NCBI RefSeq assembly: GCF_046119375.1
Contig: NW_027362773.1
Span: forward strand, 213,838,001-213,902,000
Direction: 5' to 3'
DNA length: 64,000 nucleotides
Source of the DNA: Phyllobates terribilis
Lineage: Eukaryota
Part shown: piece after piece, positions 26,566 through 64,000 of the stretch
Numbering within the stretch: position 1 is the stretch's first letter
Layout: the number at the start of each line of letters is the position of its first letter
Notes under the pieces: model-generated
Database searches by the model: none
What the model was told of the DNA's origin: nothing
What the model saw: the letters and a program-made list of their open reading frames with translations, nothing else
Position numbers and translations under genes: made by a program

Positions 26566-26836
26566 ATGACTATACTCCAAGATCTTTCCTTCTTTTGTCT
26601 ACTCTCAGTATTTTGTCAGCTGGGTAACTCTGGCGCTTTATTATGCCCAGGAAGGGGATTTTCATTTTCAGACTCCTGTTTTCGGTTTGTGGAGCAAAGG
26701 ACTGATTTTTGGGGTGCAAGAAGGTCCTGTGGAGCATGCGGAGGGCACCTGGCCAATGTATACAATGACAACTTGGCACCTCTGGCACAACAGATAAATG
26801 AGACATCACGCTGGTGGGTCAACCAGAATGATCTAG
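26566..26836 (+). CDS. PKD1L3: PKD1L exon: signal peptide and N-half of the C-type lectin
   Basis: MTILQDLSFFCLLSVFCQLGNSG...CPGRGFSFSDSCFRF...FWGARRSCGACGGHLA...WWVNQNDL|gtgaga (phase 1). Confidence 0.88.
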
Positions 26837-29800
26837 GTGAGAGTTACTTATTTTTATGCTCTGTATGAAGGGTTCCAGCTGATTCCTGGTATTGGGATGA
26901 TATGCACCTGTGGTCGCTTTCTAGAAGGGACACAGCAGAAATCTATGTGCTTGCCATCAATGTAGCCAATTTTTAGTTTAACAAATTTCAGGAACAAATT
27001 TGCAGCATGTGAATTCACCATTTTTGCAGAAATTTCCATAACTGAAAATCGGTTCCGTTCAAGTAAATGGAGTTATTTCAGATGAATGCATGAAAATCTG
27101 CAATGTGTGAACTTAATTTAAAGGTTGCATCCACACTGGTAAAATGAGGGCAAACCCTAATATTGGACCCGTGCTACAGAATAACCTATTCTATGAGTAA
27201 GGGAAAGTCCACAGGACCAATGTCTCCACGTACGTGGAAAATGGACCGAATACTCTGATCAGACTTTAATCAGAGTTTGATCAGTTTTTCCCGGACGTGA
27301 AGAGGTAAAAAAAAGTTTCTCCATTCTGACAAACCGTGAAAGTCATCCGAGTGTGGTCCGATGTTTTTCAAGGAACCGTAGACTTTCATTGCCGATTTTG
27401 ATCCGACCCCTCGTATCAAAATCGGACATGTCTCTGATTTTTTCTGCGGACCACTCGGACTAAGGAAAAAATCGGACAGGTGCACAGCCACATAGAATAT
27501 CATAGCTACGAGCGCTATCCCTGGATAGCACTCATCCAATAAAATCGTGTGCACTGAAATTCCCATTGATCGTATTTAATTTAATAGACATTTCTGCCAA
27601 TAATCCCAATATGCAATAAATGACTGTAAGACCTCATGCACGTGGCTGTATTACAGATTTGTCTGATGTGAATCTGTCTTACATGTGAATTTGCACGCCA
27701 AGCCCCCATTTGGGTAAACCCCATTGCATGCCATATTAGAGAGACATTCGGAGAATAAGAGTTGTACACAGATGCATAGTCTATATGAAGTGCCGTTAAA
27801 GAAGAATTATAGTTTCAGGCTATGTTCACACGTTGCATTTTTGCTGTGTATTTTTCTGCAGGCAAAACCTGCTCTCTTGGCAGTAAAGAAGCTGCTTCCA
27901 AAAAGCAGGTTTTGCTGCGTTTTTTTGCTGCGTTTTTCAGGATACCTAAGTTCAGCTATGCTTCCACCACAGAAGCATGAACACAGGTCATCAATGCAAG
28001 ACATATGTGAAGCCATAACATAAAACCATTTTTAGAAAAAAGGGCAATTTGATCAAATTATTTAGTGGAAAAAGATTTATGTCTGAAAGTAACTATTCTG
28101 AACAAAAAAGTTCATATGAGTTCATAAAAAAATACAAAACTATTTAGATTTGAGAGTCCTCAGTGGTTGATACCTTTTAATGGCTAACTGAAAAGATGGT
28201 AACAAATTGCAAGCTTTCAAGACTACTCAGGTCTCTTCATCAGGCATAGTATACCACAAAATCTGAAGAGTCACATATTTATACACAATAAGACACACAA
28301 AAAATGCAATAGTGTGTCTTATTGTGTATAAATATGTGACTCTTCAGATTTTGTGGTATACTATGCCTGATGAAGAGACCTGAGTAGTCTCAAAAGCTTG
28401 CAATTTGTTACCATCTTTTCAGTTAGCCATTAAAAGGTATCAACCACTGAGGACTCTCACATCTAAATATTTTTCGATCTACTGGCTAACACGGTACAAG
28501 AATATATATTTTCGCTATAAAAAAATACACAATTACAAATGTAACAGCGGAGGGAGGTGAATTGGTCAGGAATAGTTTACCTAAGACATTGGCAGAGCAT
28601 TGAGTTTGTAGGATACTGTTTACTTTCACATATTGGTCGGCCCTTAAGTTGGTCAAGTATTGTTCAGTTTCACACCTTGGTCAGCAAATGTTTACTTTAA
28701 CACATATCACTAATTTAATTAAACTGTACTAATCCTAATTTCCCTTCTCAGGTGACGATACCAAGACATTATGGTTGAAACTTGGGAAAAAAACAAAAAT
28801 ATATCGGTTTCACATACTGCTGTACCTGCTTTTTTCTACTAAAAATGCAGCAAAACCTGATACCAGCAATTTTTGCTACTTTTTTTGCACTTACCCATTG
28901 CTTTCTATGGGTGAAAAAGCGCTGCAAAAACACTGAAAGAATTGACCTGCTACAGTTTTAAAAAACGCAGCAGTTTTCCAATTCAGTCAGGAAAAAAAAA
29001 ACAATGTGTCTGCATGAAATTTCTGAAATCTCATGGAACAGAGATCCAGCATGCATACCCTGCTCCATTCAACCCCAATCTGGGGTTCCCAGTGGTCACA
29101 CCCCAGCGATCAGCAAGTTATCCCTATCCAAAGTATAGGGAATAACTTTTTCCTGTTCTTTTTTGTTGGGAGGTGGGAATAACCCATTAACTATTAGGGT
29201 GAATTCACTCCTTTTCACTTATATGGGAGAGAGTTTGCAGTACTAATAACAGCAGTGTATGGGAGAGAGTTTGCAGTGCTAATAACAGCAATGTATGGAG
29301 CGGTGCTGCTTCTGGTCTTTGACGGACTTAGATGAATCATCAATATTAAAGTCCTGGAAAACTCTTTTAATGAGAGTGCGAGAGAGAATTTTACAACACC
29401 AAAGTTCGGGTCCTCAGTGACTTCAATGGGGTTCGGGTTCTGGTTCAAGTTCGGGTACACTTCTGGTACCCGAACCAATTTTGGATTAAAGTTCGGACGA
29501 ACCCGAACATCCACTGCTCTGCTCATCCCTAGTTGTTACGCTTCTAAAAATGTTAACAGGTTGTAACCTGGTTGTGTTTCCCTCCACAGTTTACAATCCC
29601 AGGGATAGAGACATCTTGCTTCAGATGTTGTGTCCGGTTTTAACACATAATGCGGAGATACAGTCTGCACCGTGTCTGCAACCAAACGGCTTCATCTGCC
29701 AGACAGGTAAGAAAACAGGGATGACGTGAAGACATTTCTGATATCTGCCTTGGAGAGTCTTGACGATAAAACCAAAGAGGGACAGTTCAGATAAAGTTGA

Positions 29801-32800: not shown

Positions 32801-35800
32801 CTGGATATGGCTCGTCAACTTTCCAACACCACGACGATGGCAGCAAACAATATATCTGTAGGTATCACACATTACTTATGATTCTTCTCTAGTTTTGGAG
32901 TGAGTGTCCATGTCCTGTAGTGAGACCTGTGCTCAAAGTCCAGCACCGTGCAGCTGGATTGGCATTCACCAGAGAACACCAGAATTGGCAGCTCCACCAT
33001 TGGCACCCATTCTTTGCACAGATGTGAGCAGGTTCACGCTGAGCAAATGTGGCCTACGTGAAAGAGTCTGGAAACACTGTGGTGAACGTTATGCTGCCTG
33101 CAACACCATCCAGCATGACTGGTTTGGAAACGGGTCATTGATGGTCTGCACGAGCCTTCATGTGATAGCCAACTTTGCCTTGACTACTGTTAGGTGCCAA
33201 GATTAAATTCTCAGAGCCATCGTCTGTCCAAGTGCAGTGGGTCCTGGGTTCCTCTTGGTACAGGAAAATGTACGGCCTCAGGCAATTCCTGGATGATTGG
33301 TACCATTGACTGACCGTCATGTTCCCCAGACCAGAATCTAATTGAGAATCTTTGGGGTATTGTGTATCAGGGAATCTGACAACGCCAAGTTGTACCACAG
33401 ACTGTCAAGGAGCCAGTGATTCCCCGATGAAGCTCTGGGAGGGGATCCCCCAGGACACCATCCTTCATCTCATTAGACACATGCCCAGACGTAGCATATG
33501 GGGGTCATACTCACCATTAAGTACCATTATGTGTTGTCGAGAATGCATACAGATCACATTATGAGTTGCCGTGATGAAATTCACACAAATTGGATCCGCC
33601 TATTATTGAATTTTTTTTTTTTTCATTTTTGGGGTGATTTGGAATTCTGTCGTCAATTGGTTGATGATCTTCTTTCCATTGACCGCTGGTAGCTAGGAAT
33701 GGCCTATGCCATCAGAAGCACCAACCAGCCAGTCTGCGTGGTCAGGAAAATTAGGGTACATCTACATGGGAATGATAGATTATCTGCTGCATGTCTGCTG
33801 AGATTTGTAGTTTAGATTGAACACCAAGATACTGGGCCAGAGCAGCAAATTGAATCCTCGAGTGCAGCAAAACTTACCCCCGACTCTGCCCACCATCATC
33901 ATAAAGCATAACGCTATCTGGATCTGACACGTGAAAAGAGTCAGAACATTTACTTTGCCCGAAAAGCAACTGAGGTTATGTAAAAACGAAAACCAGTTCT
34001 TGCATGTCAATCTTGGGCATAGATGGATTTGTTAATGTTTGTTGCCTGTTACCAATAAGACTTAAATTCTCACAATACAGGACATTCTCATCCATCTCAA
34101 TTTTATGATGCAAGATGAAGAGGAGCCAAACAAAACTGATCTGGTGAGATGACCTTACCTACAATTACCCTATGTTATATTTTTTACAGATATCTGCCTC
34201 TGTTCATAGCTAAGTATCAGCACTGTACCTCCTAAAATAATGGTATAAAAAGTGTTCAAAAAGTTGTAAAATGGAACAAAAAAAATCGTTTTATCTCAAT
34301 AGGTAAAATAAATAAGTTTTCACCCAGCTCTACTAACAGAACAACAAAACAAAGTTATGGCTCTCAGATTTCTTTGGCAGAGATCACAACATGATGCAAG
34401 TGATTGGAATCGACCCACAACTTCGAAAACCAAGCAAGTCACAAAAAATCAACTGGTTATAACCTTGCGGGTCGTAATGTCAACCCATTCACTTGCATTG
34501 TTCTGACCCCAATCCTCATATTTGGAGGATGCATTGTGTATGAATTTTACCATACTATATATGGATTACTTGGGCCTAGAACAGGGATGTCAAACTCAAA
34601 TACACAGACGGCCGAAATTAAAAACTGAGACAAAGTCGCGGGCCGACCATGATATTTATTAAAAAAAATATCTACAATTGAGGAAGTTTTTCCTTATCAC
34701 CTAATATAACGATGAAACTTTTGGTATGGAAACTAAGTTAATGTTGTCCCATGAACAAAGTACATTTAGTTAATAGATCTTAGAATAAAATATTGGAATA
34801 ATATAATATGCTATCTAAGAGCAGTAAAAAGCTTACGGCCCAATGGCCTATTTTAAATATGTACGGTAATAACAAAGGATAAAAACCTTGAATTAATTAA
34901 TAATAAAGGTAATAAAGTAGGATGCCAACAAAAGTGACGCCAAACAAAGTATGATATCCCCACAGAGAATTCCTCTACTGTACCCTCCACATGCATATAT
35001 GATGACCCTACTGGATCCCCCTCAAACCTCCCAACAAAGTATGATGTCCCAACAGTGATCCTCACATAGTCCTCCATACAGTATAATGACCCCACATAGT
35101 CCTCCATACAGAATAATGGGCTCCACATAGTCCTCCATACAGTATAATGGCCCCACATAGTCCTCCATACAGTATAATGGCCCCACATAGTCCTCCATAC
35201 AGAAAAATGGGCCCACATAGTCATCCATACAGTATAATGGCCCCGCATAGTCCTCCATACAGTATAATGGACCCTACATAGTCCTCCATACAGAATAATG
35301 GGCTCCACATAGTCCTCCATACAGTATAATGCCCCCATATAGTCCTCCATACAGAATAATGGGCCCACATAGTCATCCATACAGTATAATGGCCCCACAT
35401 AGTCCTCCATACAGTATAATGGGCCCCACATAGTCTTCCATACAGAATAATGGGCTCCACATAGTCCTCCATACAGTATAATGGCCCCACATAGTCCTCC
35501 ATACGGTATAATGACCCCACATAGTCCTCCATACAGTATAATGACCCCACATAGTCCTCCATATAGTATAATGACCCCACATAGTCCAACATACAGTATA
35601 ATGGCCCCACATAGTCCTCCATACGGTATAATGACCCCACATAGTCCTCCATACAGAATAATGGTTCCACATAGTCCTCCATACAGTATAATGACCCCAC
35701 ATAGTCCTCCATACAGTATAATGACCCCACATAGTCCTCCATACAGAATAATGGTTCCACATAGTCCTCCATACAGGATAATGAGCCCCACATAGTCCAG

Positions 35801-50800: not shown

Positions 50801-53800
50801 GCACTAAAATGCTCGGGTGCTTGAAGCTCGGGCCAAGCTCACCGTGATACTCGGGTGCTCGACCCGAGCAACGAGCCCAATGTTAGTCTATGGGAGACCC
50901 GAGCATTTTTGCGGCGGCACCCCCGGCAGTCTGTAGAAAGCCTAAAAAGTGCCCAAAACGATAGTGACAGTGCTCAAATGACATGGGGACAACATGGGCA
51001 TCGCCCCAGGAAGCATTTCTGACCCCCAGGTCACTGCTGTCAACAACGTGGTCAGAGGTATTAAGCCACTTTTACGGGCTCACAATAAAACGTTCAAAAA
51101 CGAAACTGAAACGGTTTTCCTGTGAAATATGTTAAGGAACTTCCTTTCCAGGGTAAAGACTTGTGTATAAGGTAAAATAAATAACCAAAAACAAAAATAC
51201 TCCTCCACACCTTGGGCCATGTTCACAAGTAGTATTTTTTATGCGTTTTTGCACTTTTGTATTGCTTTCAACCGTGACAAATGCATTCACCGGGAAATGT
51301 CATTTTAACATTTTACAACCTTATCTGGCCATGTGCTGTGTGACACATGCATACAGTGCTGAAAATACATGGGAACAGCATGGGGAAGACCCCTGGAAGC
51401 ATCTCTGACAACCAGGTCACTGCCTAAAAGTGTGCCCATCAGAAGTGATCCTTGCCACATCAGAAGATGCAGACTTGCAACTATCCCTGTGCAAGTCCTT
51501 GTCCCAGGGCAGTGTTCAATTGTACCTCCCCCATTCCTTGCAATGCAAGCGCAAGTATGCAGCCTGCCACCCACCCACCCCCAGGCTGCAATACCATACT
51601 GCTAGCTTGCTTGCACTTGAAATTGGGCCTTTTGGGCATGTGGAGGCGGAATCTGGCCACCACGTCATGGCTGCTGTGGATGCTGTTTCTTGAGAAACTG
51701 CCATAACAAGTGAAGACTGAGAGGAGGGGGCATCTTTGCATGCAGTATGGACAGGGGATTGCCTTGCACGCACAACAGGGGGTTCTATTACACGCACAAC
51801 AGCGGAAGAAGCAGTGTTGACACCCGCTGACACTGGTCGTGGACCCTGGGGTTCACCCCACAAAGTCAGGTGCTTTGCTGACATGTGCCTGATCATGCTG
51901 GTGGTGGTCAGGCTGGTAGTTTTGTCACCCCTGCTGATGCTGGCATGGCAGGTGGTACAAATGGCCAGACTCTGGAAGACCTACCGGTTGTACTGGCAAC
52001 TTCCCTCGTGTTGGTGTTACGGGGAACTGTTGCCCGCCTTTTGTGTGCGGCCACCACACTGCTTCTTCCTGCCTGTTGGGGTACTCTGCCTCCCTCCTCT
52101 TGTGTGCTGCTGGCCTCGCTCTGCGTGTCCTCCTGCCACGTTGGGTCAGTTACTAGATCATCCACCACCTCCGCCTCTTCCACTTGCGCACCACGATCCT
52201 CCTCCTCACTTCGTGGCAATTGTGTCTCGTCGTCGTCCACCTCTTGTGACAAATTGCCAGCGTCGACTTTCTCTGGCCGTGGCTGTTCAAATATTTGGGC
52301 ATCGCTACATGGGATCTCCTCTTCCACCACTTCAAGCGGAGCAGGCGAGAGGCACAAATATGGAAATGGACCAGTGAACAGCTCTTCAGAGTGTCCAAGT
52401 GCGGGATCAGTTGCTGTCTGACGACACTCGGCTTCGTGGGAGGAAGGAGCATCAGGGTGAGGAGGAGTATTCGGTCGAGACTCACTGCTACTAAAACTTG
52501 ACCGTGTGGAAGACAGACCGGAGGTGGTGGTGCCCAGGTAACAGGAAGTATTATCTGCTATTCAATTAATAACCTGTTCACACTGATCAGTTCGCAATAC
52601 TAGTGTTGTAGTGTGCTTCCCTAATAATTCGGTCAAGAAGTGGAGCGAGAAGATGTGGCTGTTGGTTGTGGCACATTTTCACCTTGGCAACGGCCCCGTC
52701 CTCTACACGCACCATCACCAGAACGTTCAGTTCCACGTCCCTTGCCACGCGCCTTGCCCATTGTAAATGAAGTAAAATAGCTTACACTCGCACTATCAAT
52801 GGAAAAAGGGTAAGCAAAAGGAGATTAGAACCGTGGAAGAGGAAAACCACAGTTCTATTTCTCTGGCCTACAACAGAATCTTTTAAACAGATATATTTGT
52901 GTCTGAACACTGAGCGAGACACTCAATTTTTTTATTTTTTATGTAAAAAAGGCAAAAAGGTGGATAATACAGAGATTTGAACCGTGGAACTGCAAAACCA
53001 CAGTTATAGTTATGTGGCCTACACCAGACTCTTTTAAACAGATATATTTGTGTCTGAACAGTCAGGGAGACACTATTACTGTTTTTTTACGGAAAAAATG
53101 CCAAAAGCAGGATAATACAGAGATTTGAACCGTGGAACTGCAAAACCACAGTTCTAGTTTTCTGGCCTACACCAGACTCTTTTAAACAGATATATTTGTG
53201 TCTGACCTGTCAGGGAGACACTATTACTGTTTTTTTTTTACGTAAAAAATGCCAAAAGCAGGATAATACAGAGATTTGCAACCGTGGAACTGCGAAACCA
53301 CAGTCCTAGTTATCTGGCCTACATCAGACTCTTTTAAACAGATATATTTGTGTCTGAACAGTCAGGGAGACACTATTACTGTTTTTTTTTACGGAAAAAA
53401 TGCCAAAAGCAGGATAATACAGAGATTTGAACCGTGGAACTGCAAAACCACAATTCTAGTTATCTGGCCTACACCAGACTCTTTTAAACAGATATATTTG
53501 TGTCTGAACAGTCAGGGAGACACTATTACTGTTTTTTTTACGGAAAAAATGCCAAAAGCAGGATAATACAGAGATTTGAACCGTGGAACTGCAAAACCAC
53601 AGTTCTAGTTATCTGGCCTACAGCAGACTCTTTTAAACAGATATATTTGTGTCTGAACAGTCAGGGAGACACTATTACTGTTTTTTTTTACGGAAAAAAT
53701 GCCAAAGCAGGATAATACAGCGATTTGTACCGTGAAACTGCAAAACCAAAGTTCTTTTTATCTGGCCTACACCAGACTCTTTTAAACAGATATATTGGTG

Positions 53801-55146
53801 TCTGAACAGTCACAGACACACTCAATTTTTTTTTTTTGCGGGGGGGGATACCAAAAGGTTAATAAGACGCGTATTTGTACAGTCTGACTGAGGAAAAAAA
53901 AATACTGGATTTAGATAAAAAAAAAAAAAGGATTTTTCCTGGCCCCTGAGACCGGGGGATAAATCGAGCAATTTGACCAGCAGGAGCACACAGGACTGTA
54001 ATGCAGTGTTTGTTGGTATAACCACTGCATCTCCTATACAGCCTGCCTGCCTGATATCTGGGATGGATATTAGTCCTGAGAAGGACTGTTTGTTTGATTT
54101 GGCAGGCTTTAGAGACCCTACACTAACTATTTTGGAGTATAAATCTCTCCTTAGCTCAGCAGCACTGACCCTACACTGGCTGATCCGGAGCGACTGTGTC
54201 CAAGATGGCGGCGCCCGGTTTTAAATATTCGAGGTGACGCTGTGCGGCCAGCCAATCACTGTAATGCCCACAAACAACATGGCTGCGGCATTACATTGAC
54301 TGGCTGGCAATCCCTGTATGTTCATTGGCTCTGTAAAGAGCGCCAAACGTGCAGGATGGAGACCCGAGCTTCCGCCCGAGTAACCCGGAAATGCTCGGTG
54401 CTCGCCGAACATCCCGAGTAGTGAGATGCTCGGGCGAGTACCGAGCAGTGTCGAGCATCCTCGCTCAACACTAAAGAGTTGCTAAAAATAAGTGAATCCT
54501 TCTCTGACAGATTTGGCCACGTCTTACATAGTCACCCATTTATCATGGTATTAAAGACCAATATTTATTGAGTTGGTGTGAGTAGATTGTCAGGACCTGG
54601 TTCATCAGCCACGCCTATAGTTCCTGGCTGTTGAACGGTAGACCTGAGAATCATTTCCTATCTCCTCTATTTTTGATTAGCCGGCATGGCTCGACTTCGT
54701 CGTTGTTGTGTGAGACACATGTGAGATCGCACCAGGCTGGCTAATCAAAGGATCAGTCTCAGATCCCAAAAGATTACCAGCATAGCCAATGGACAGTGTC
54801 CTGTGAATCAATTTGCACCAAAATGTAACATCCTATTCTATGAACCAACAATGTACAAAGCAATGGCTGGATTATAAACTTTTATTACTTTTTAAAAAAC
54901 TTTTTAAAGTCTTTTGTGATTTCCAGGTTGTGGGATTTGCAGTTTTCTTTGCTTTGATCTTAAAGAAGGTAGATGAAGATGAAGAGGAACTTCTGGATAC
55001 AGAATTGGGGATAGCAGGTTCGTTCGTCTGTTCTACTTTTTAGATTGATCATTTCAGCTTTGATCATTGGGTATGTAAGCACGTGTTATACAATATTCCC
55101 TGAAATCATATAAAACCAAAACAGACCTCACCCAAAAAAAATAAAA

Positions 55147-55206
<60 letters not shown>

Positions 55207-56681
55207 TACAGACCAAAAGTTTGGACACACCTCATTTAAAGATTTTTCTGTGATTTCATGACTATGAAAATTGTACATTCACACTATGAATTAACACATG
55301 TGGAATTATATACTTAACAAAAAAGTGTGACACAACTGAAAATATGTTTTATATTCTAGGTTCTTCAAAGTAGCCACCTTTTCCTTTGATGACTGCTTTG
55401 CACACTCTTGGCATTCTCTTGATGAGCTTCAAGAGGTAGTCACCGGAAATGGTCTTCCAACAATCTTGAACGAGTTCCCAGAGATGCTTAGCACTTGTTG
55501 GCCCTTTTGCCTACACTCTGTGGTCCAGCTCACCCCAAACCATCTCGATTGGGTTCAGGTCTGGTGACTGTGGAGGCCTGGAGGTGTGTTTGGGGTCATT
55601 GTCCTGTTGAAAAATAAATGCTGGTCCAACTAAACGCAAACCGGATGGAATAGCATGCCGCTGCAAGATGCTGTGGTAGCCATGCTGGTTCAGTATGCCT
55701 TCAATTTTGAATAAATCCCCAACAGTGTAACCAGCAAAGCACCCCCACACCATCACACCTCCTCCTCCATGCTTCACGGTGGGAACCAGGCATGTAGAGT
55801 CCATCCGTTCACCTTTTCTGCGTCGCACAAAGACACGGTGGTTGGAACCAAAGATCTCAAATTTGTACTCATCAGACCAAAGAACAGATTTCTACTGGTC
55901 TAATGTCCATTCCTTGTGTTCTTTGGCCCAAACAAGTCTCTTCTGCTTGTTGCCTGCCCTTAGCAGTGGTTTCCTAGCAGCTATTTTACCATGAAGGCCT
56001 GCTGCACAAAGTCTCCTCTTAACAGTTGTTGTAGAGATGTGTCTGCTGCTAGAACTCTGTGTGGCATTGACCAAGTGTCTAATCTGAGCTGCTGTTAACC
56101 TGCGATTTCTGAGGCTGGTGAGTCGGATAAACTTATCCTCAGAAGCAGAGGTGACTCTTGGTCTTCCTTTCCTGGGGCGGTCCTCATGTGATCCAGTTTC
56201 TTTGTAGCGCTTGATGGTTTTTGCAACTGCACTTGGGGACACTTTCAAAGTTTTCCCAATTTTTCGGACTGACTGACCTTCATTTATTAAAGTAATGATG
56301 GTCACTCGTTTTTCTTTACTTAGTTGCTTTTTTCTTGCCATAATACAAATTCTAACAGTCTATTCAGTAGGACTATCAGCTGTGTATCCACCTGACTTCT
56401 GCACAACACAACTGATGGTCCCAACCCCATTTATAAGGCAAGATATCCCACTTATTAAACCCAACAGGGCACAACTGTGAAATGAAAACCATTTCCGGTG
56501 ACTACCTCTTGAAGCTCATCAAGAGAATGCCAAGAGTGTGCAAAGCAGTCATCAAAGCAAAAAGTGGCTACTTTGTGATGCCTTCAGTGTGAATGTACAA
56601 TTTTCATAGTCATGAAAATACAGAAAAATCTTTAAATGAGAAGGTGTGTCCAAACTTTTTGTCTGTACTGTATATATATAG

Positions 56682-56732
<51 letters not shown>

Positions 56733-57308
56733 GATATATATATGTAGATATATGTATATTATAGAATTGCTGCATTTGCATAACTTTAGGTGCCTATACA
56801 CCTTGGATTGCAAATGTAACAACCATTTCTCACCACATCCAATAAACACATGAATGCTCGGCTATGCATTTGTAGCATATCTACTATGTTCTGTTTTGAT
56901 GCGAATCCCAGAAGACATGTAGTAATTAGTGATGATCGAGCATATTCGTTGCTCGAGATTTACGAGCATGCTCGGGCGAGCGCCTATTATCTTCAGCATG
57001 CTCTAGCGTGAAGTTTTCATCGCTCCGTGAATATGATATGCAACTGATTGACAGCTTTAATACATGTGAGGAATGCTGGAAAACCAGGCATTCCTCACAT
57101 GTATTAAAGCTGTCAAACACTCGCAAATCATGCTCACGGAGCGACGAAAACTTAACGCCAGAGCATGCTGAGGATAATAGGTTCTCGCCCGAGCATGCTC
57201 TTAAATCTCGAGCAACGAGCATGCTCGATCATCACTAGTAGTAATGTAATGTAATTGTTGCTTTACATTGCAGATGAATATCAGACCTGTGATGAGACGG
57301 CACTGTGA
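26566..57308 (+). CDS. PKD1L3: Polycystin-1-like protein (PKD1L3 by synteny, PKD1L2-like TM region), about 1111 aa, lacking the TRPP channel module
   Basis: 23 exons with consistent splice phases, total 3336 nt (a multiple of 3), no internal stop. Domain order: signal peptide, CTL, GAIN/GPS (CLCNHLS), TM1, PLAT, TM2-5. Head-to-head with DHODH as in mammals. The family call is firm; the L3 versus L2 symbol and the last exon are less certain. Confidence 0.75.
28141..28469. mobile_element. Penelope-like inverted terminal-repeat pair (158-bp arms, 13-bp spacer), each arm with a hammerhead-like core
   Basis: Arms 28141-28298 and 28312-28469 with about 3 mismatches. CTGATGA-a-GAGAC-ctgagta-GTCTY-RAAAGCTT at 28367-28399 (+) and 28243-28211 (-). 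Confidence 0.75.
29590..29706 (+). CDS. PKD1L3: PKD1L exon: C-half of the C-type lectin
   Basis: cacag|VYNPRDRDILLQMLCPVL...SAPCLQPNGFICQT|gtaaga; 117 nt, phase 1-1. Confidence 0.85.
29825..29892 (+). CDS. PKD1L3: PKD1L exon (EGSRCQMERHQNVTRFTVRRDIK)
   Basis: ctttctttttgcag|...AAA|gtgagt; 68 nt, phase 1-0, required to restore frame. Confidence 0.75.
31099..32276 (+). mobile_element. Internally deleted Tc1 element
   Basis: TA|CAGGTGCATCTC...GAGATGCACCTA|TA; long TIRs; retains KFPQSVMVWGAMSSAGVGPL and the NPIEN region but lacks the DNA-binding domain. Confidence 0.9.
32643..32700 (+). CDS. PKD1L3: PKD1L exon with furin-type site (SHIFTGRRKRSVESSQDVP)
   Basis: catcag|...CCTG|gtaaga; 58 nt, phase 0-1. 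Confidence 0.75.
32796..32857 (+). CDS. PKD1L3: PKD1L exon (DLLDMARQLSNTTTMAANNIS)
   Basis: cttttag|...TCT|gtaggt; 62 nt, phase 1-0. Confidence 0.72.
32900..33660 (+). mobile_element. Degraded Tc1 fragment (family of 8253-9811, opposite strand)
   Basis: Remnants resembling FTDESRFTLS, ERYAACNTIQHD and WEGIPQDTI. Confidence 0.75.
34081..34143 (+). CDS. PKD1L3: PKD1L exon (DILIHLNFMMQDEEEPNKTDL)
   Basis: tacag|...CTG|gtgaga; 63 nt, phase 0-0 (symmetric, could be skipped). Confidence 0.6.
34582..35833. mobile_element. hAT-type MITE carrying a minisatellite
   Basis: CAGGGATGTCAAACTC...GAGTTTGACATG; near-TSD GCCTAGAA / GTCTAGAA. Confidence 0.75.
35060..35790. repeat. About 30-bp minisatellite (CACATAGTCCTCCATACAGTATAATGGCCC)n
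   Basis: About 24 copies, directly visible. Confidence 0.95.
35929..36096 (+). CDS. PKD1L3: PKD1L exon, GAIN-A region
   Basis: cacag|VDTLFLLNELSVW...SWTQSE|gtagat; 168 nt. Confidence 0.82.
36183..36301 (+). CDS. PKD1L3: PKD1L exon, GAIN region
   Basis: ttcag|IQSMTNSALGIMNEYQ...SFSVLLS|gtaacg; 119 nt, phase 0-2. Confidence 0.85.
36748..36871 (+). CDS. PKD1L3: PKD1L exon, GAIN region
   Basis: tccag|VNTSNINKYTLSYPDPVAEVVFPSRTALQSVL...VQVQ|gtaaga; 124 nt; resembles recalled PKD1L3 SYTLGHPAPVRLGFPS. Confidence 0.87.
37357..38094. mobile_element. hAT-type MITE
   Basis: CAGGCCTGCACAAC...GTTGTGCACTCCTG; near-TSD CGTTAGAG / CATTAGAG. Confidence 0.75.
38100..39318 (-). mobile_element. Degraded Tc1 element
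   Basis: Remnants GGGGIMFWAGI and WSPSCSDLSLIENLWSILK; terminal ...ataatttacagcactgtg|TA. Confidence 0.75.
39578..40485. mobile_element. MITE containing a 16-bp tandem array
   Basis: Termini resembling GGCTGCATTCA / TGAATGTAGCC; (AGAGCA[G/A]GTCCTCTTC)n at 39675-40230, about 34 copies. Confidence 0.75.
41038..41166 (+). CDS. PKD1L3: PKD1L exon, GAIN region
   Basis: tacag|MMSFSQNPY...ISGTVASLSV...HNLSDNFQ|gtcggt; 129 nt. Confidence 0.87.
42259..42466 (+). CDS. PKD1L3: PKD1L exon, GAIN region
   Basis: aacag|IFLPRTASS...LDLYHG...QSAL|gtatga; 208 nt, phase 0-1. Confidence 0.85.
42714..42895 (+). CDS. PKD1L3: PKD1L exon, start of the GPS motif
   Basis: tctag|DSYTWILTPD...QCAFWNANLQNWSSDGCL|gtacag; 182 nt. 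Confidence 0.93.
43082..45415. mobile_element. hAT (Charlie-like) non-autonomous element with internal palindrome and minisatellite
   Basis: TIR CAGGGGTCTCAAAC; TSD TTCTAGAC on both sides; palindrome of about 300 bp at 43156-43460. Confidence 0.9.
43575..45050. repeat. 30-31-bp G-rich minisatellite (GGGGACCTGGATGGGGCACATAGCCACAAGA)n
   Basis: Roughly 45-50 copies; source of the spurious long ORFs at 43451-44885. Confidence 0.95.
45424..46532. mobile_element. Second related hAT element, adjacent and inverted
   Basis: CAAGGGTCTCAAAC...TTTTGAGACCCTT; TSD TTCTAGAC on both sides; degenerate CCTGTAATAATGTCCC repeats at 45790-46320. Confidence 0.85.
46602..46832 (+). CDS. PKD1L3: PKD1L exon, GPS cleavage site and TM1
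   Basis: tgcag|VGPQTTVTKVQCLCNHLSVFGSSFLVLP...NPVIVVLV...WARRMD..MQ|gtagtc; 231 nt. Confidence 0.96.
47398..47499 (+). CDS. PKD1L3: PKD1L exon, start of the PLAT domain
   Basis: cccag|NRLIIPRDSDPCALYRYLITVCTGHRRGAGTSAK|gtaaga; 102 nt. Confidence 0.95.
47580..47758 (+). CDS. PKD1L3: PKD1L exon, PLAT domain
   Basis: gacag|VCLSLCGAE...VFRSGNVDVF...LGELKSITLNHDGSGAHKSW|gtaaga; 179 nt. Confidence 0.95.
47985..48131 (+). CDS. PKD1L3: PKD1L exon, end of the PLAT domain
   Basis: catag|YVTQVTVQD...WHFLCNTWLS...ELRSF|gtaacc; 147 nt. Confidence 0.95.
48430..48629 (+). CDS. PKD1L3: PKD1L exon, TM2
   Basis: gcaag|RNIFLQKT...DEHIWISI...FTRVQRVSCCMCLLLC..INLMFW|gtgagt; 200 nt. Confidence 0.95.
48709..48917 (+). 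CDS. PKD1L3: PKD1L exon, TM3 and basic loop
   Basis: cgcag|GNFILTWKDIMIAFESAILMFPVNLLIIYIFRNTRPK...VLK|gtgaga; 209 nt. Confidence 0.95.
49009..49150 (+). CDS. PKD1L3: PKD1L exon, cytoplasmic loop
   Basis: attag|DLSETVRTLSQTSRN...KQLTPG|gtgagt; 142 nt. Confidence 0.88.
50170..50392 (+). CDS. PKD1L3: PKD1L exon, cytoplasmic loop
   Basis: tctag|LSSSAP...FCAHYVFRKLKKVSQDL...LPSQ|gtaaga; 223 nt. Confidence 0.88.
50482..50689 (+). CDS. PKD1L3: PKD1L exon, TM4-TM5
   Basis: tgcag|...KKRLPWWFLFIGWSIL...FTMMYGFLYGKDSSIRWIVSM...FILQPLK|gtcagt; 208 nt. Confidence 0.95.
50788..54473. mobile_element. Non-autonomous hAT element (3686 bp) with transposase remnants
   Basis: TIR TAGTGTTGAGC; perfect 8-bp TSD AAGAGTTG (50780-50787 and 54474-54481); BED finger AICTTCH...MIRHMSAKH on the minus strand; subterminal GCTCG/CGAGC repeats. 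Confidence 0.93.
52830..53830. repeat. About 150-bp tandem repeat, roughly 6.5 copies, inside the hAT element
   Basis: The same text recurs at 53041 and 53341, and nearly at 53641; the ORF track shows a 50-aa period. Confidence 0.92.
54927..55017 (+). CDS. PKD1L3: PKD1L exon, end of TM5 and acidic linker
   Basis: tccag|VVGFAVFFALILKKVDEDEEELLDTELGIA|gttcgt; 91 nt, phase 0-1. Confidence 0.9.
55204..56670 (-). mobile_element. Tc1 transposon between (TA)n tracts; defective transposase
   Basis: CAGTACAGACCAAAAGTTTGGACACACCT TIRs; MARKKQLSKEKRVTII...; QQDNDPKHTSR joined directly to PPQSPDLNPIE (internal deletion). Confidence 0.93.
56927..57237. mobile_element. Palindromic hAT MITE (311 bp)
   Basis: TIR TAGTGATGATCGAGCAT; perfect TSD GTAGTAAT (56919-56926 and 57238-57245); fully fold-back. 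Confidence 0.92.
57274..57308 (+). CDS. PKD1L3: Probable terminal coding exon of the PKD1L gene (DEYQTCDETAL*)
   Basis: gctttacattgcag| acceptor; phase 1 gives 11 aa then TGA; AATAAA at 57584-57589. No homology support. Confidence 0.45.
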
Positions 57309-57799
57309 TGGATTTCCAGGCTCTCTGCACTCTCTCTCATTATATGCACCGGATCTACCTGGATCTTCTTTCATTTTATTGGGACAGATACATTCTGCAG
57401 CGCCGTATACAAATTTTACAAAGCTCCATTTCTTTTTTTCTCATGGTGTGTTTTATTTAGGTTTGTATTATGTATATAGGCAAACTATGGTATTGCCTTT
57501 ATGACCAGACACAGTTTTTTTTATTGCTTTTATATCAGTTAAAAAGTGAAGGATTTCAATTTTTTTTCTTCTTTTTCCATTAAAATAAATATATATTACT
57601 AGCAAATATTATTGACCTCCCTTTTGTAAAATTGCATTCCGCCAATTCTTGTTATAGGAAAATGCAGCTTATATGTAGCTTATAGAAGTGCAGAAGTTTT
57701 GTGCACCCCACAAGTGATGGAGAAAGCATTCACACTCGAGGTTTGCACTCCCAGACCAATAGAGGTGCTCTTCTGCCATTTCAAGATGGCAGAAGTTCA

Positions 57800-58182
57800 A
57801 AACTTTCTGCAAGACTTTTTCTGAGAGCAAAACTTTTTGCAAAACTGTTTGAGAGCAAAACTTTTTGCAAAACTTTCTGAGAGCAAAACGTTTTGCAAAA
57901 CTTTCTGAGAGCAAAACGTTTTTCAAAACTTTCTGAGAGCAAAACTTTTTGCAAAACTTTCTGAGAGCAAAACTTTTTGCAAAACTTTCTGAGAGCAAAA
58001 CTTTTTGCAAAACTTTCTGAGAGCAAAACTTTTTGCAAAACTTTCTGAGAGCAAAACTTTTTGCAAAACTTTCTGAGAGCAAAACTTTTTGCAAAACTTT
58101 CTGAGAGCAAAACTTTTTGCAAAACTTTCTGAGAGCAAAACTTTTTGCAAAACTTTCTGAGAGCAAAACTTTTTGCAAAACT
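57800..58182. repeat. 28-bp tandem repeat (GCAAAACTTTCTGAGAGCAAAACTTTTT)n
   Basis: About 13 copies; 28-aa period in the ORF track. Confidence 0.95.
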
Positions 58183-59607
58183 TCATGTCCACAGGGAAAT
58201 CGGCACCCAATTATGCAGATTTTGCTACAGTTTTCCTTTTTGCCTTTAAAAATAAAATCACCTTAGAAATTCCCTTTTTTCCAAAAATACTAAGTGTATA
58301 AAAGAAGTAACCTGTCCATTTTTCTGGCATTTTCTTCTAGGAAGCCAATCTAAAATGCTAGGAAGTCTATCAATATTATACAATAAAAGTTAATGACAAG
58401 GCTACAAAAATGCCGCAAAGACGCCGGGGCGACTTTTTGAGTATTTTGTAAGCGTTTTTTTTAAGCGTTTTCGCCTCATAAAACACTAGACTTTATTCAT
58501 GCTGAATGGGTTTAAAAAAATATCGGAAAATCGTCCAGAAAATAAAGCCATATAAAAACAGTTACAAAATGTTAACAAAATGCATCAGGAAAAAGTTGGC
58601 AAAAAACAACAACATTTCAGTACAAAAAAAGTCCACATTGAAAGAACAATTTTCCACTTGAAAAACTTGTTATATTTCACCATCTCAAAAATACTCTGTG
58701 TGAACCTACTCTTGGGCTATGTTCACTCAGAGTTTTGCAAATCTGATGATTTTTTTCAAGCAAAAACAGCTAGGAAACAATTCTTTTTTTGGTAAGTTTT
58801 TTGGAGGCGTTTTAATTTTCCTTAAGCAATGTTTACATGCAGCATTTTTGCTGTGTTTTTTTTTCTGCAGCCAAAACCTGCTCTCCTGGCAGGAAAAAAA
58901 ACACTGCAATCAAAATTTTTGCAGTGTTTTTGATGCATTTTTTGCATAGTATTTGGTTGGGGATTACATATGTGCTTTGTGCACAGTATATGTTTAATGT
59001 ATTTAATTTTATTCACCAAAAACGCTTCAAAAATGTGGTAAAAAATACTGTTGTGTTTTTTTGCAACGCTTTTTTACTTTCTCATTGCGTCACGTGTTTT
59101 TGAAATATATATATTTTTTAAGACGATTTTGAAGAGGATCCGCTCCAAATATCTCCATGTGAACATAGCCTTGGGTTTTTGTTTTTTTTTGTTAGCATCT
59201 GTCATCCCTTGAGAGGACCAGACAGAGGACCCTCTTCTGTGACATCTTCATAAGTCGTCACTGTCTTTAACGTTGGACAAAATGGTTTCCATACATCTTT
59301 CTCAGAAAAAGTATCGCACTAGGGAACAGTGGAACAGAATTTTTAACAATTTAGATTTTTTTATTTTATTTTAGGATTGAACAGACTTGTCTAGATGACG
59401 CATTACAGGCAATGTCATAATTATCTATATAACTTTTTATTATAATTTGTGTCTCTCTCCTGTAAAGTATGTTATACACTAATTTATGGAAACAATAACA
59501 TTTATTATGTGTCAATTTAATTAAAAATATAATAGAATGTAATACTATAAGAACGATGGTTTATGTGCATTGCTTCAGATCTGTATCACAGGCTGCTATG
59601 TATACAC

Positions 59608-60016
59608 TAGGCCTCATTTATCAAAACTATCCGGATGAAAAGCTGTCTTTGTTGTCCATAGCAACCAATCATGGCTCAGCTTTCATTTCATAAACTGCTC
59701 TGGGAAAATGAAAGCTGAGCCGTGATTGGTTGCTATAGGAAACAAAGACAAGTTTTCACTTAATCCTTATAAATGAGCCCGCCGTATATTCAGAGGAGTT
59801 AGACAATACTTGTACACCATGTTATGACTCTTTTCAGCCCTGCACTAGACATAACGCAGTAATGTAATCAAAACTGTCTTTGATGCCCATAACAACCAAT
59901 CACAGCGCAGCTTTCATTTTACCTGAGCACTTTAAGAAATGAAAGCTGTGCTCTGATTGGTTGCTATGGGCAACAGACACAGTACCTCTTTTTAACTGTA
60001 TTAATAAATGAGGCCT
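59608..60016. mobile_element. MITE with two internal fold-back units
   Basis: TA|GGCCTCATTTATCA...TAATAAATGAGGCC|TA; two CAACCAATCA..CAGCTTTCATTT..AAATGAAAGCTG..TGATTGGTTG units. Confidence 0.7.
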
Positions 60017-61309
60017 AGTGTCTCAGTTTTGCCTGAAAATGTTCTTATAGGAATGAGGCCATAATGCCATGTGCGCATAGCTTTTTTTTAGGAGTCTTTT
60101 ACAGCAGGTTTTCTTTAAAAAAAAAACGCTTAAAAATAGCTAAAAAAAAAATCTTGAAAGACTTCTATTAATTTCTATTGAAAAACAATTTGCTGTTCAT
60201 ATGTTCAGTCTTTGGAATATTTCTTATTAAATTCACATTTACACATTTACGTTACAATAGAAGTCAATGGGAAAGCTAAAAAAAAACAACACAAAAATGC
60301 CTGTTTTTATTTTGAAGGGTTTTGTAAAAAATTTTGAGGCGTCTAAAAAAACCTCTAGCGCTTAATTCATTAATGGATTTAAAAAAAAATGTCCCAGAAA
60401 TTGTCTAAAAAAGTTTTTTTATTTTTTAACGTTAACGTGTTTTCAGAAAACGCTTCTGGAAATGTTAACAAATCGCTAAAATATAAAAAATTCAGGACAA
60501 AAAATGGCTAGCAAAATCCAACATGGAAGGAGCAAGATCTGAAGCAATTTCAGGAAAAACTTGTAATTTTTGACTGCCTAAAAAAAATTAAAAATACTGT
60601 ATGAACATCCCCTAACTGTTCTTATACTGGTTGGTCATGGATGATTTTCTTAAGGTTATAAAGGGGATTACCGGTTTCAGAAAACCTCTGTCATCTTTGT
60701 CCGCTGCTCCCCGTGTCTGTTATTATCTGCAGCGCTGACGTCACATCAACAGCGCTGCAGTCAATCAGTGACGTTAGAGCGACTCGTGCCATCAACTCGG
60801 GCAGAGCTGCTGATTAGCTGCAGCGCTGCAGACAATAACACATACTAGAATCAGCGGTGGAGACAAAGAGCTGGACCAGGGGAGGATGATGTTTTTTCAA
60901 GCAAACTACAGCTGAGGGAGAAAGGCTTTACGAAACCAGAATATTCTTTAATGGATGAAAAAAATCTTCCTGGAGTTTGTATGTCCTCCCATAGTTTACA
61001 TAGAGATATTCAGGTTTCCTCCGTGCTCCAAAACCAGATCTGAAACTCAGTAATGTGATGTCATTTATGTCTGTATTTAAGCTGTATTTTTCTGTAATGA
61101 TCTCTACCTATTTATCCACAATAAAAGCCATTTGTAGTGACCACAATGGTGTACGTGTGCTCAGCTGTGTATAGCTAGAGACCATGCACCTGTCCGGCTG
61201 GGTGTGCCGCCTTGTTTATTTGATGGGGAGGGGAGATATTTTCGCTCCTCCATCATTTACAGCTTACTGTACAACAACAGGCTTGAAATCTCAGTTCTGT
61301 CCAAGAACC

Positions 61310-61622
61310 ATGTGGATTTTGTGCTACTTGACCTTACTTCTCTTGACCGAATGTCACGTCAACTTTGCCCAATGTCCCGGCACCCAGAAGAATGTAGGAG
61401 GCCATTGCATTCAGCTCGTCAATCAAGAGTTGACTTATGATGGAGCAAAAGCTTGGTGCCAGAAACAAGATGGACGGTTGGCCCAGATTGGAAACCAGAA
61501 CACACTAGATGAAATATTACTGCTAATTAAAGATGAGGGATCTTACTGGATTGAAGTCGTGTCACCTATAAAAGACCAGATGGCGCAAGGTAGCCAAATT
61601 CAAGGCAGCAAGAATAAAAGAG
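61310..61622 (+). CDS. First coding exon of a probable tandem PKD1L3-like paralog (signal peptide and N-half of C-type lectin)
   Basis: aaccATG; MWILCYLTLLLLTECHVNFAQCPG...HCIQLV...TYDGAKAWCQKQDGRLAQI...SYWI...NKR|gtaagc (phase 1). Same exon architecture as 26566-26836. The downstream domains lie outside the window. Confidence 0.75.
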
Positions 61623-63027
61623 GTAAGCTCGAGAAATAGCTCTGAGAGAAGGCAAATGAAGATGAAATAGTCTACGTATGGGGGAAATTTAGGGTTTGAC
61701 CCATCTGGTCTTGCCTTGGATTTTGTGACCAAGAGCAGGTCTTCTGTTTCCAAAGGAATTGGAACCAACACAAGGGTCACACTATTATATTGTATGCTAC
61801 AATATTAAAAACTACCATTCCTCAAGATGTGGTGGATATGCCATGTCCCTTAAGGAGGGGCCATATTTTCAATCAGTGTGCTGTCCATGTGCTAAGCGGA
61901 AACTCAATGGACACACTGATCCAATAGTAATTTTTCACACCGACTAATAAAAAAAATGCAGCTTGCACTAGTATGGTTCGTTGCATGCCCAAAGCATGCA
62001 GCACAGAGTTGCACATGGAGCCAGTCAAATCCAAAATTTGCGGCTTAAAAACTTTTTTAAAACGTTGCAAAATTTTTGCACAAATTTACTGTATTCCAAT
62101 ACCCCCTCCTTGAATTATTTTATGTATGTCCAGTATTTTTGGGCAAATTTTGTGTCATTCTAGTGGAACATGCATTTTTTTCTGCAATGCCTTGCAAAAA
62201 AAAATTTAAAGACAAAAATAATTAGCTTTTTTAATTCTGTGCAAAATTCATGAACTATGTGCACCATTTTGAAAAATTTGCTGCCAAAAATGTCAATAAA
62301 TATCGCAAGAAAAGAAAAGTGACTTAAAAAAAAACAAAAACAAAACCCCACACAAATGATCAATTGGTTCAATATTTCAAAGTTTTTTTCCTTTATTGTT
62401 TGCCTTGTTTTTCTTCCCCATCTATTGATAAAGTTGCACATTGTGCTCTGTGCATAAATTTATTGTATCTACATAAATTTAAGAACTTACGCACACAGCA
62501 TACTGCCTCTGCCATATATAGGCTCCATCTCTTCCCTAGAAGCAATGCATATAGAGTTCAATGGAATATGCCACCATTTTTTCTACACTAATCAGCCTGA
62601 TAAAGCCTTTGTAAAAAAAATGGAAATACAGTAGAGGTCTCATGCACCAATATTAAAATCTCTATAGAGCCATAATACAGCTGTTTGCATGACATCTTAA
62701 TCCATACAAAAGGAGCTATTAATACAACCCTAAAGGGTTTTTCTGCTTTTAATATTAATGACCTATCTTTAGGTTCTGTTGTGTAATGATCATATATACT
62801 ACAAATTAATGGTATAAGCTGGTAGTACAATTTATGGCCTTTACTCAATGTACAGACCTGTGCCATCCTTGGTATGGGCAATATCTTCAATCAGCTAATT
62901 AGTGGGGGTGCCAGGAGTTGTACTGGTGAAAAAATACTCTGGATTTTGGATGAAGCTACCTTTTGGAAATACTTTATACGTCCTGTGTAAAAATACTTTA
63001 TTTTGTACTTGATTAACCTATTGTTAG

Positions 63028-63960
63028 AACCAGAACAAGATCAAAACCAACAACAAGACCAACAACAGGACAGTCGAGAAGTTCAGCATAAAGATGTACA
63101 GGAAGACCAAAATGAAAGACAACAAGGCAACGGAGAAGATACGCAAAAAAATGAACCACAAAACCAACAAGAAGACCAACACAGAGGAAAAGACGAAGAC
63201 CAACAAGACCAATACAAAGGAAAAAATGAAGACAAAGAGGGCCAAAAAGACCAACAAGACCAACAAAAAGGAAAAGATGACCAACAAGAAGACCAACAAG
63301 ACCAACACAGAGGAAAAGATGAAGACCAAGAAGACCTATACAAAAGAGAAAATGAAGGCCAACAGGGCCAAAAAGACCAACAAGACGAACAAAAAGGAAA
63401 AGACCAACAAGACCAACACAGAGGAAAAGACGAAGACCAAGAAGACCTATACAAAAGAGAAAATAAAGACCAACAGGGCCAAAAAGACGAACAAAAAGGA
63501 AAAGACCAACAAGACCAACACAGAGGAAAAGGCGATGACCAAGAAGACCTATACAAAAGAGAAAATAAAGACCAACAGGGCCAAAAAGACCAACAAGACC
63601 AACAAAAAGGAAAAGACCAACAAGACCAACACAGAGGAAAAGACGAAGACCAAGAAGACCTATACAAAAGAGAAAATAATGACCAACAAGGCCAAAATGA
63701 CCAACAGGACCAACAAAAAGGAAAAGACCAACAAGACCAACACAGAGGAAAAGACAAAGACCAACAAGACCTATACAAAAGAGAAAATGAAGACCAACAG
63801 GGCAAAAATGACCAACAAGGGCAACAAAAAGGAATAGACAATCAAGAAGACCAAAATGAAGGAGAGAACACAGATAAAAGCAAATATGATAAAAAAGAAA
63901 GACACCAAGAACACGACGAAGAGAGAGACTATGATTTCAAGAACCACCACACAGAACATG
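63028..63960 (+). CDS. Paralog exon 2: 311-codon Gln/Asp/Glu/Lys-rich tandem-repeat exon
   Basis: attgttag|AA CCA GAA...CAT G|gtaggt; 933 nt, phase 1-1, open throughout; about 37-aa (111-bp) unit, with HRGK x6 and DLYKREN x5. Confidence 0.78.
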
Positions 63961-64000
63961 GTAGGTGTTAAGTCAAAATGTTGTAGTAGTCTGGGTGGGA

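Follow-up and report, generated by a model that had tools for sequence, protein, structure and literature searches.

Can a folded extracellular domain be interrupted by a very large disordered segment, carried on one exon that splicing may take or leave? The question is raised by 61310-63960 of the window (the whole stretch of frog DNA analysed here, 64,000 nucleotides), where an exon encoding the N-terminal half of a C-type lectin domain is followed by 933 nt of charged, glutamine-rich repeats. I propose, at a confidence that stops a little short of even, that a second polycystin-1-like gene (gene 2), nearest to PKD1L2, has its 5' end in this region, and that a repeat has been exonised within its lectin-splitting intron. 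Gene 2 would sit 3' of a PKD1L3-like gene (gene 1), its first exon keeping the ground plan of the family, including the end in phase 1. The repeat itself is probably a real, lineage-specific exon of this PKD1L2-like paralog, a candidate that draws its support from intrinsic features.

The first exon of gene 2 and its relatives

Gene 1, which I take to be PKD1L3-like from its neighbour DHODH (by human synteny), provides the nearest comparison. The parts of it needed here are these:

26566..26836, + strand: first exon of gene 1, signal peptide and lectin N-half, 271 nt, phase 1
29590..29706, + strand: lectin C-half exon of gene 1, ending ..CPVLTHNAEIQSAPCLQPNGFICQT, 117 nt, phase 1-1
54927..55017, + strand: last visible exon of gene 1, VVGFAVFFALILKKVDEDEEELLDTELGIA, directly continuing the frame of the preceding TM exon (end at 50689)

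The initial annotation had the N-half exon of gene 1, in phase 1, followed directly by the C-half exon, and the two lie as it described, the latter closing with ..CLQPNGFICQT. Gene 1 also has exons for GPS (E 4e-5) and PLAT (E 7e-4); a PDB sequence search with one of its TM exons gave no match. Gene 2 lies on the same strand and has a first exon of the same design:

61261..61262, + strand: strong acceptor-like AG, TTTTCGCTCCTCCATCATTTACAG/CT, 48 nt 5' of the gene 2 ATG
61310..61622, + strand: first coding exon of gene 2, signal peptide and lectin N-half, 313 nt, phase 1
61623..63027, + strand: candidate intron 1, 1405 nt, donor GAG/GTAAGC, acceptor ..TTGATTAACCTATTGTTAG/AA
63028..63960, + strand: candidate repeat exon, 933 nt, phase 1-1, 311 codons, rich in Q, D, K and E

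The ATG at 61310 stands in the context ACCATGT and opens a signal peptide beginning MWILCYLTLLLL. An N-half of this domain comprises the Cys pair of the beta-hairpin, the alpha-1 Cys, two helices and the WIGL strand, and a C-half the long-loop region, beta-3 to beta-5, a further Cys pair and the closing Cys in ..F.C. The N-half of gene 2 has three cysteines and reads YWIEV where WIGL is expected; a Q/K-rich tail of 21 aa follows it. A strong GT donor (GAG/GTAAGC) closes the exon in phase 1, ranked in the top 0.3% among all GT in the window by an approximate matrix, the source of splice-site scores throughout. Against Pfam Lectin_C (PF00059) the exon aligns to profile positions 2-48 of 107 with E 7e-5 and 23.9 bits, above the gathering cut-off of 22.6, which places it among C-type lectin N-halves. 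Lectin_C is present in 93 of its 100 nearest Atlas clusters, and a HMMER search of 1.84 billion cluster representatives returned 98 matches to lectin proteins. Among those representatives there was no self match or frog orthologue, the matches being distant lectins and the N-termini of fish PKD1L2; in a PDB sequence search the exon matched just a designed HEAT-like repeat protein, by chance.

PKD1L2 comprises a C-type lectin, Gal-lectin, PKD, GPS, PLAT and 11 TM segments (PMC2742400). The annotated fish protein (KAF3695083.1, P0090) shares with gene 2 a first exon in which a signal peptide precedes the lectin N-half and strand beta-2 is followed by a long tail, and the two are co-linear along the full exon (40% identity over 58 aa, E 2e-13), with the common motif CP..QK..GG.C...V......A.AWC.K..G.LA.I.N..T. 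Length and phase agree as well: the fish exon measures 310 nt, that of gene 2 313 nt, and both end in phase 1. First exons of PKD1L2 and PKD1L3 end in phase 1 some 15-20 codons after the WIGL strand, and that of gene 2 does so too; that of gene 1 is 271 nt long. Vertebrate PKD1L2 proteins other than the fish ones fell below the E-value cut-off against exon 1. Judged by its sequence, then, this exon is truly homologous to the PKD1L2/3-type exon for signal peptide and lectin N-half. Between the N-half exons of genes 1 and 2 identity is a mere 28% across 61 aa, so that the paralogy is old and gene 2 is no recent tandem copy.

Another view is that the locus is a remnant or a chimera, in which an old PKD1L2-like exon 1 and the repeat exon are followed by unrelated lectin exons or none. 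The half lectin would not fold, and the product, if there is one, would be either a charged repeat protein that is secreted or something with no function. Exon 1 is indeed highly diverged, at most about 40% identical to any relative and with WIEV in place of WIGL, and no annotated protein containing it was found. Motif scans of 61623-64000 revealed no lectin C-half-like ORF (the window stops 40 nt past the repeat exon), an absence over 2.4 kb, whereas in fish the C-half lies 1.3 kb 3' of exon 1. Nevertheless, the 104-codon frame is intact, the signal peptide and all three N-half cysteines are kept, and a top-scoring donor stands at the position typical of the family, none of which is expected of an old relic. 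In the C-type lectin fold, moreover, an N-half alone leaves one lectin cysteine unpaired, as it would be here if no C-half followed. I consider such a remnant improbable; the exons of gene 2 may simply be unannotated.

Where gene 1 may end

The state of gene 1 is odd, for no TM6-TM11 or channel-like ORF belonging to it appears in 55-61.3 kb. If gene 1 is intact, it must run past the exons of gene 2, and the repeat exon might then be part of gene 1, or of a read-through from gene 1 to gene 2. The last visible exon would be spliced from 55017 to 63028, or first to 61263. The repeat would then lie in the loop that follows TM5 on the cytoplasmic side, a loop acidic already (VDEDEEELLDTE), with the channel exons past the window. 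The phases allow it: 55017 is in phase 1, and 61263 and 63028 alike are in-frame phase-1 acceptors. A polyampholyte devoid of Cys and sequons would suit a cytoplasmic loop.

Agreement of phase, however, is a mere one-in-three coincidence. The donor at 55018 is weak (CAG/GTTCGT, phase 1), and reading through it brings a stop after 8 codons (55041-55043), with AATAAA about 100 nt farther on, at 55140 and 55146; gene 1 thus has a plausible end upstream, as the independence of gene 2 would have it. The intron demanded, 8 kb long, would contain the intact signal-peptide exon of another gene. I regard membership of the repeat in gene 1 as the least probable of the readings weighed here, very unlikely indeed. 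The segment MWILCYLTLLLL was also considered as TM6 of gene 1 in place of a signal peptide, and this is ruled out because the next 60 residues are a lectin N-half.

The AG at 61261..61262 is in phase 1 with the gene 2 ORF, which is open from 61175. Such a site might belong to a non-coding 5' exon of gene 2, or offer a route for read-through splicing from gene 1.

Is the repeat coding?

The stretch from 63028 to 63960 is bordered by AG at 63026-27 and by GT at 63961-62 (ATG/GTAGGT), a donor in the 98.5th percentile and the sole good GT in the exon by the same approximate matrix; its 933 nt are 3 x 311. If 61622 is joined to 63028, the junction (G + AA) encodes Glu and the reading frame remains open. 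The coordinates and phases that the initial annotation gave for a lectin N-half exon followed by a symmetric 933-nt repeat are thus confirmed at the level of sequence. Within the stretch lie:

63028..63179, + strand: unique 5' flank, frame and composition as in the array, T by codon position 0/2/8
63180..63854, + strand: tandem array of six HRGK..DQQDQ units of 42, 37, 34, 37, 37 and 38 aa, core period 111 nt
63855..63960, + strand: unique 3' flank, ..NEGENTDKSKYDKKERHQEHDEERDYDFKNHHTEH, in which the proposed frame alone is open, T by codon position 3/1/7

Tandem Repeats Finder (TRF) reports the array at 63289-63847, with a period of 111 nt, 5.1 copies and 91% matches. The units had been called near-perfect 37-aa repeats, which is a fair description of the central four, but the six range from 34 to 42 aa. 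A triplet-based satellite would by itself yield much of the periodicity.

An open frame by itself is weak evidence of coding here, because T makes up 4.9% of the stretch and another + frame contains a single stop. In the frame set by the phase of exon 1 there are none, and in the others 1 and 20, the nearly open one closing at 63835. One may therefore suppose that the array is a non-coding satellite, intronic or intergenic, derived from a triplet repeat of the (CAA/GAC) type, that its open frame and its AG and GT are fortuitous, and that exon 1 splices past it. The window is rich in tandem repeats with long open frames, and a composition so poor in T makes stops rare in any case. Moreover, changes between units are mostly non-synonymous, with 2 columns synonymous-only against 18 in which a residue changes, so that there is no synonymous bias. 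Nor was a protein bearing the repeat found in the collections searched. A search of 5.8 billion proteins produced none (candidates limited to 170-542 aa, with a low-complexity query), and the Atlas held no relatives (best score 0.68). A further search, over 1070-3404 aa, used the exon rows aligned to a long lectin protein as anchor; beyond the anchor itself it brought up just a PLA2 receptor, a weak negative, MAFFT having shredded the short rows. Neither of the candidate upstream exons has a tail significantly similar to the repeat at the DNA level, and the literature on frog PKD1L genes and PKD1L3 repeats yielded nothing specific. No transcript, annotated protein or orthologous protein containing the exon was found; the protein searches were constrained by rules on query length and by low complexity, so the result amounts to absence of evidence.

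Several features nonetheless tell against the satellite. T falls at codon positions 1/2/3 in the numbers 9/9/28, that is, 28 of 46 at the third position, and within the unique flanks, outside the array, the proportion is 15 of 21; second positions are 82% A. The flanks share the frame and composition of the array, and through the 3' flank no frame but the proposed one is open. That frame fits the phase of exon 1. The switch in composition falls at the splice-like sites, the T-poor stretch beginning exactly at the AG and stopping at the sole good GT, and the differences in length between units are all multiples of 3. By comparison, the satellite in an intron at 35.1-35.8 kb of the window is interrupted by stops and frame breaks. 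The fit of frame and phase, a codon-position bias that extends beyond the array and consensus splice sites where the frame begins and ends all argue for a coding exon, and I consider a fortuitous satellite unlikely.

The lectin with and without the repeat

If the repeat is an exon of gene 2, its product is easily characterised. Its 310 aa include Q 82, D 59, K 40, E 35, G 25, N 18, R 15 and H 12, with no Cys, Met, Trp or Ala, a charged fraction of 0.48 and a net charge per residue of -0.13. The near absence of hydrophobic residues and the lack of Cys asserted in the initial annotation hold true, with 9 of 310 residues aliphatic or aromatic besides 8 Tyr. The disorder it supposed also finds support in structure prediction: AlphaFold2, run on the single sequence, gives a pLDDT of 55.7 and a pTM of 0.20, with just long low-confidence helices. 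By composition and model alike the product ranks as an intrinsically disordered polyampholyte, and the segment is predicted to have no compact or stable fold.

Exonisation would have turned a lineage-specific, triplet-periodic tandem repeat, rich in A, C and G and lying in a phase-1 intron, into a symmetric coding exon of 933 nt. In fish PKD1L2 the next exon is the lectin C-half, 1.3 kb 3' of exon 1 and entered by a phase-1 acceptor; in gene 2 the next in-phase candidate, 1.4 kb 3' of exon 1 and likewise with a phase-1 acceptor, is the repeat exon. Because the phase-1 acceptor of the fish C-half exon is the next one used after exon 1, a phase 1-1 exon at this position would amount to an in-frame insertion that could be skipped. 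Gene 1 differs in that its short C-half exon comes straight after its N-half exon, and no repeat exon intervenes. In gene 2, 61622 would be spliced to 63028. The C-half and the remainder of the gene would lie beyond the window; in a PKD1L2/PKD1L3 gene that remainder includes REJ/GAIN-GPS, a first TM segment with PLAT after it, and 11 TM in all with a channel-like module at the C-terminus. Inclusion would add about 311 residues of an acidic, Gln-rich, Cys-free polyampholyte after lectin strand beta-2, at the WIGL position, which in a whole lectin is the surface hairpin opening the long-loop region. There the segment could loop out and leave the fold unbroken, provided that a C-half exon does follow past the window. 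It might serve as a spacer or tether, or as a splicing-controlled variant.

Taken to its limit, this reading would have the mature frog PKD1L2-like lectin interrupted at the beta-2 hairpin by a 311-residue loop of Q, D, K and E, encoded by one skippable phase 1-1 exon. A change in splicing, or in the copy number of the repeat, would then convert a compact lectin into one that bears a giant acidic tether or fails to fold, and back. I think this full scheme unlikely. If expressed, the exon would clearly exemplify the exonisation of a young triplet-type repeat within an intron that divides a folded extracellular domain. It would provide a natural test of how large a disordered loop a C-type lectin can tolerate, and it would show whether exon skipping gates the sensor domain of a polycystin-like receptor. 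The locus bears, too, on the odd state of the PKD1L3-like gene 1, with no channel exons in the window. At present it stands as an unannotated candidate exon with intrinsic support and a pointer for follow-up of the locus.

Repeats within PKD1L ectodomains are not new. The annotated fish PKD1L2 carries a coding repeat of 44 aa, rich in T, P, N and G (132 nt x 4.3 copies, 97% identity), inside one exon, and the gene 2 array (111 nt x 5.1, 91%) resembles it in being young, lineage-specific and contained in one large exon of the N-terminal part. Rodent PKD1L3 has S/T/P-rich repeats. Those ectodomain repeats are mucin-like, of the S/T/P kind, and stand after the lectin and PKD domains, whereas that of gene 2 is a Q/D/K/E polyampholyte and stands in the intron that splits the lectin.

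A further likeness is to the low-complexity or purine-rich cassette exons that have been exonised to encode disordered linkers. An internal exon of 933 nt is unusually long, and this one would lie at the long end for that class. It shares with such exons a symmetric phase, a variable unit length and the predicted lack of a fold, and its content of GAA, GAC and AAG is purine-rich and resembles splicing enhancers.

A polycystin-1-like gene and a probable second one

The window is vertebrate DNA (G+C 42%, no N) that carries Tc1-type transposons and many satellites. Gene 1, the upstream polycystin-1-like gene, occupies the + strand between 26.5 kb and at least 55 kb. Its GPS motif is divided between two exons, matching with E 4e-5 and 0.014; one exon encodes PLAT (E 7e-4), and several encode TM segments, the last of these ending at 50689. 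A DHODH-like ORF, seen by eye, lies upstream and head-to-head. Since human PKD1L3 also neighbours DHODH, gene 1 is probably its orthologue. The lectin N-half exon of gene 1 is followed by a C-half exon, as had been noticed initially.

Exons of gene 1
26566-26836, + strand: first exon, signal peptide and lectin N-half, phase 1
29590-29706, + strand: short lectin C-half exon, ..CLQPNGFICQT
54927-55017, + strand: exon after 50689, VVGFAVFFALILKKVDEDEEELLDTELGIA, ending in phase 1; last visible exon

Gene 2 opens with an ATG at 61310 (context ACCATGT), and its first exon, 313 nt, ends in phase 1 at the donor GAG|GTAAGC (61622/61623). The initial annotation read this exon as a lectin N-half, and so it is: Pfam Lectin_C matches at profile positions 2-48 of 107, exceeding the gathering score, all 98 significant matches among 1.84 billion representative proteins are lectin proteins, and 93 of the 100 nearest clusters in the Atlas collection are Lectin_C. 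No close protein of any length was found among those representatives. The matches co-linear with the exon from the N-terminus on all come from fish and bear the name polycystin-1-like 2 (KAF3695083.1, or P0090, and the short models P0036, P0044, P0064, P0069 and P0074). Pairwise identity is 40% to P0090 (58 aa, E 2e-13) and just 28% to the first exon of gene 1 (E 1e-7), so the two genes are paralogs, as claimed, but old ones, gene 2 lying closer to PKD1L2. The sole PDB sequence match of exon 1 is 4xl5_C, where residues 56-80 (61475-61549, lectin helix region LAQIGNQNTLDEILLLIKDEG) resemble the consensus sequence of a designed protein with HEAT-like repeats, which I take to be chance.

The repeat exon, coding or satellite

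A gap of 1405 nt separates exon 1 from the candidate repeat exon (63028-63960, 933 nt), bounded by the acceptor TTGTTAG|AA and the donor ATG|GTAGGT. The G at the end of exon 1 joins AA to make Glu, and the frame then stays open for 311 codons, so the exon is symmetric, phase 1-1. The coordinates and phases first proposed for both exons are borne out at the level of sequence. TRF finds a period of 111 nt (5.1 copies, 91% matches), and the predicted protein has six units (42, 37, 34, 37, 37 and 38 aa) between a unique head of 50 aa and a unique tail of 35 aa. It would contain Q 82, D 59, K 40, E 35, G 25, N 18, R 15, H 12 and Y 8, and it is indeed almost devoid of hydrophobic residues, with nine besides Tyr; Cys, Met, Trp and Ala are absent. 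Charged residues make up a fraction of 0.48, and the net charge is negative. Structure prediction, suggested at the outset as a check (AlphaFold2, no alignment), gives long low-confidence helices only (pLDDT 55.7, pTM 0.20), pointing to a segment without a compact fold. Five units, the second to the sixth, contain DLYKRE (63306-63800), a dibasic KR beside Tyr in an acidic context, and the tail contains ERDYDF; the resemblance of these to the contexts in which secreted proteins are cut by prohormone convertases or sulfated on tyrosine is speculative.

The open frame alone is little evidence, because T is scarce (4.9%, against 56% A), the second + frame is nearly open with its single stop, and other satellites have long open frames. 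Tandem arrays at 39500-40400, 43450-45200, 23300-24400, 52750-53900 and 57798-58183 are open at length in two or more frames or on both strands; long ORFs inside repeats are frequent here.

It is nonetheless unlikely that the repeat is a non-coding satellite. The frame set by the phase of exon 1 has no stops, the other two having 1 and 20. T falls at the three codon positions 9/9/28 times, A occupies 82% of second positions, and length differences between units are all multiples of three. The T bias is found also in the unique flanks outside the array (0/2/8 and 3/1/7). The 3' flank is open in the proposed frame only, which closes 8 nt past the donor, and the T-poor composition extends from the acceptor AG to the one GT in the stretch that scores well by an approximate matrix. 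The satellite at 35060-35800, which lies in an intron of gene 1 (30-nt unit ..CCACATAGTCCTCCATACAGTATAATGG.., PHSPPYSIMA in blocks) and served as a non-coding control, has frame breaks and TAG stops. In favour of a satellite, one derived from a triplet would partly mimic the codon-position bias and the unit lengths, differences between units are mostly non-synonymous, and 933 nt is long for an internal exon. I give a real exon of a PKD1L2-like paralog somewhat less than an even chance.

The repeat matched no protein among those of 170-542 aa and has no relative in Atlas. If the collection includes the RefSeq proteins of this frog, both exons are probably missing from annotated proteins, which makes expression less likely without refuting it. 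PKD1L genes are narrowly expressed, and a diverged first exon or a low-complexity exon is easily missed by annotation pipelines.

Position within the lectin domain

In the fish PKD1L2 locus of P0090 (L001, Channa argus CM015721.1), exon 1 is 310 nt, phase 1, and ends about 17 codons past the WLGV strand. Exon 1 of gene 2 shares this design, ending 21 codons past YWIEV. The fish C-half exon (GPFSWLDGSYITYSNW...CNKRLPFICQF) lies 1.3 kb downstream of exon 1 with a phase-1 acceptor, so the lectin-splitting intron of this family is phase 1, with the C-half next. The deposited model KAF3695083.1 omits this exon (L001:4650-4810), which falls inside its first intron, and because of this its protein goes from lectin N-half to partial Gal-lectin: an annotation gap, not biology.

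A phase 1-1 exon in this intron would act as an in-frame insertion after strand beta-2. In the lectin fold this point is a surface hairpin from which the long-loop region starts, and a long loop is sterically possible there. The repeat may be looped out of the lectin at this point, and skipping of its exon may act as a switch, as the initial annotation proposed. No C-half-like ORF occurs in 61623-64000, the window ending 40 nt past the repeat exon. Gene 2 might instead be a remnant or a chimeric locus, which I consider improbable.

PKD1L ectodomains are known to carry coding tandem repeats that are specific to a lineage. Rodent PKD1L3 has S/T/P repeats, and annotated fish PKD1L2 has a coding array within one exon (132-nt unit, 4.3 copies, 97% identity). 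The fish array is T/P/N/G-rich, whereas the frog repeat is a Q/D/K/E polyampholyte; both that composition and a location within the intron dividing the lectin would be new if the frog exon is real.

The end of gene 1

Gene 1 is either truncated after TM5 or has 3' exons beyond the window. Its last visible exon, which I take to be similar to the post-TM5 loop of PKD1, ends in phase 1, and no TM6-11 or channel-type ORF was seen in 55-61.3 kb, so an in-frame splice from 55017 to the repeat exon is possible. The repeat would then belong to gene 1 or a read-through transcript, joined directly or by way of a 360-nt exon that begins at the strong acceptor 61262, and would lie in a cytoplasmic loop. 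This is very unlikely: the donor, CAG|GTTCGT, is weak by the approximate matrix, reading through meets a stop after eight codons (55041-55043), and beyond it are AATAAA hexamers at 55140 and 55146, though these are frequent in the window.

The acceptor-like site, made up of a pyrimidine tract and CAG (61260-61262), is 48 nt 5' of the gene 2 ATG and shares its frame with an ORF that is open from 61175 and has an upstream in-frame ATG at 61184; it suggests a spliced 5' leader of gene 2 or read-through from gene 1. Immediately 5' of the gene 2 start is a SINE-like segment (60900-61140, translated ..LPGVCMSSHSLHRDIQVSSVLQ..) with AATAAA at 61120, and a further acceptor-like site, near 60899, would offer gene 1 another ending, ..ANYS-stop.
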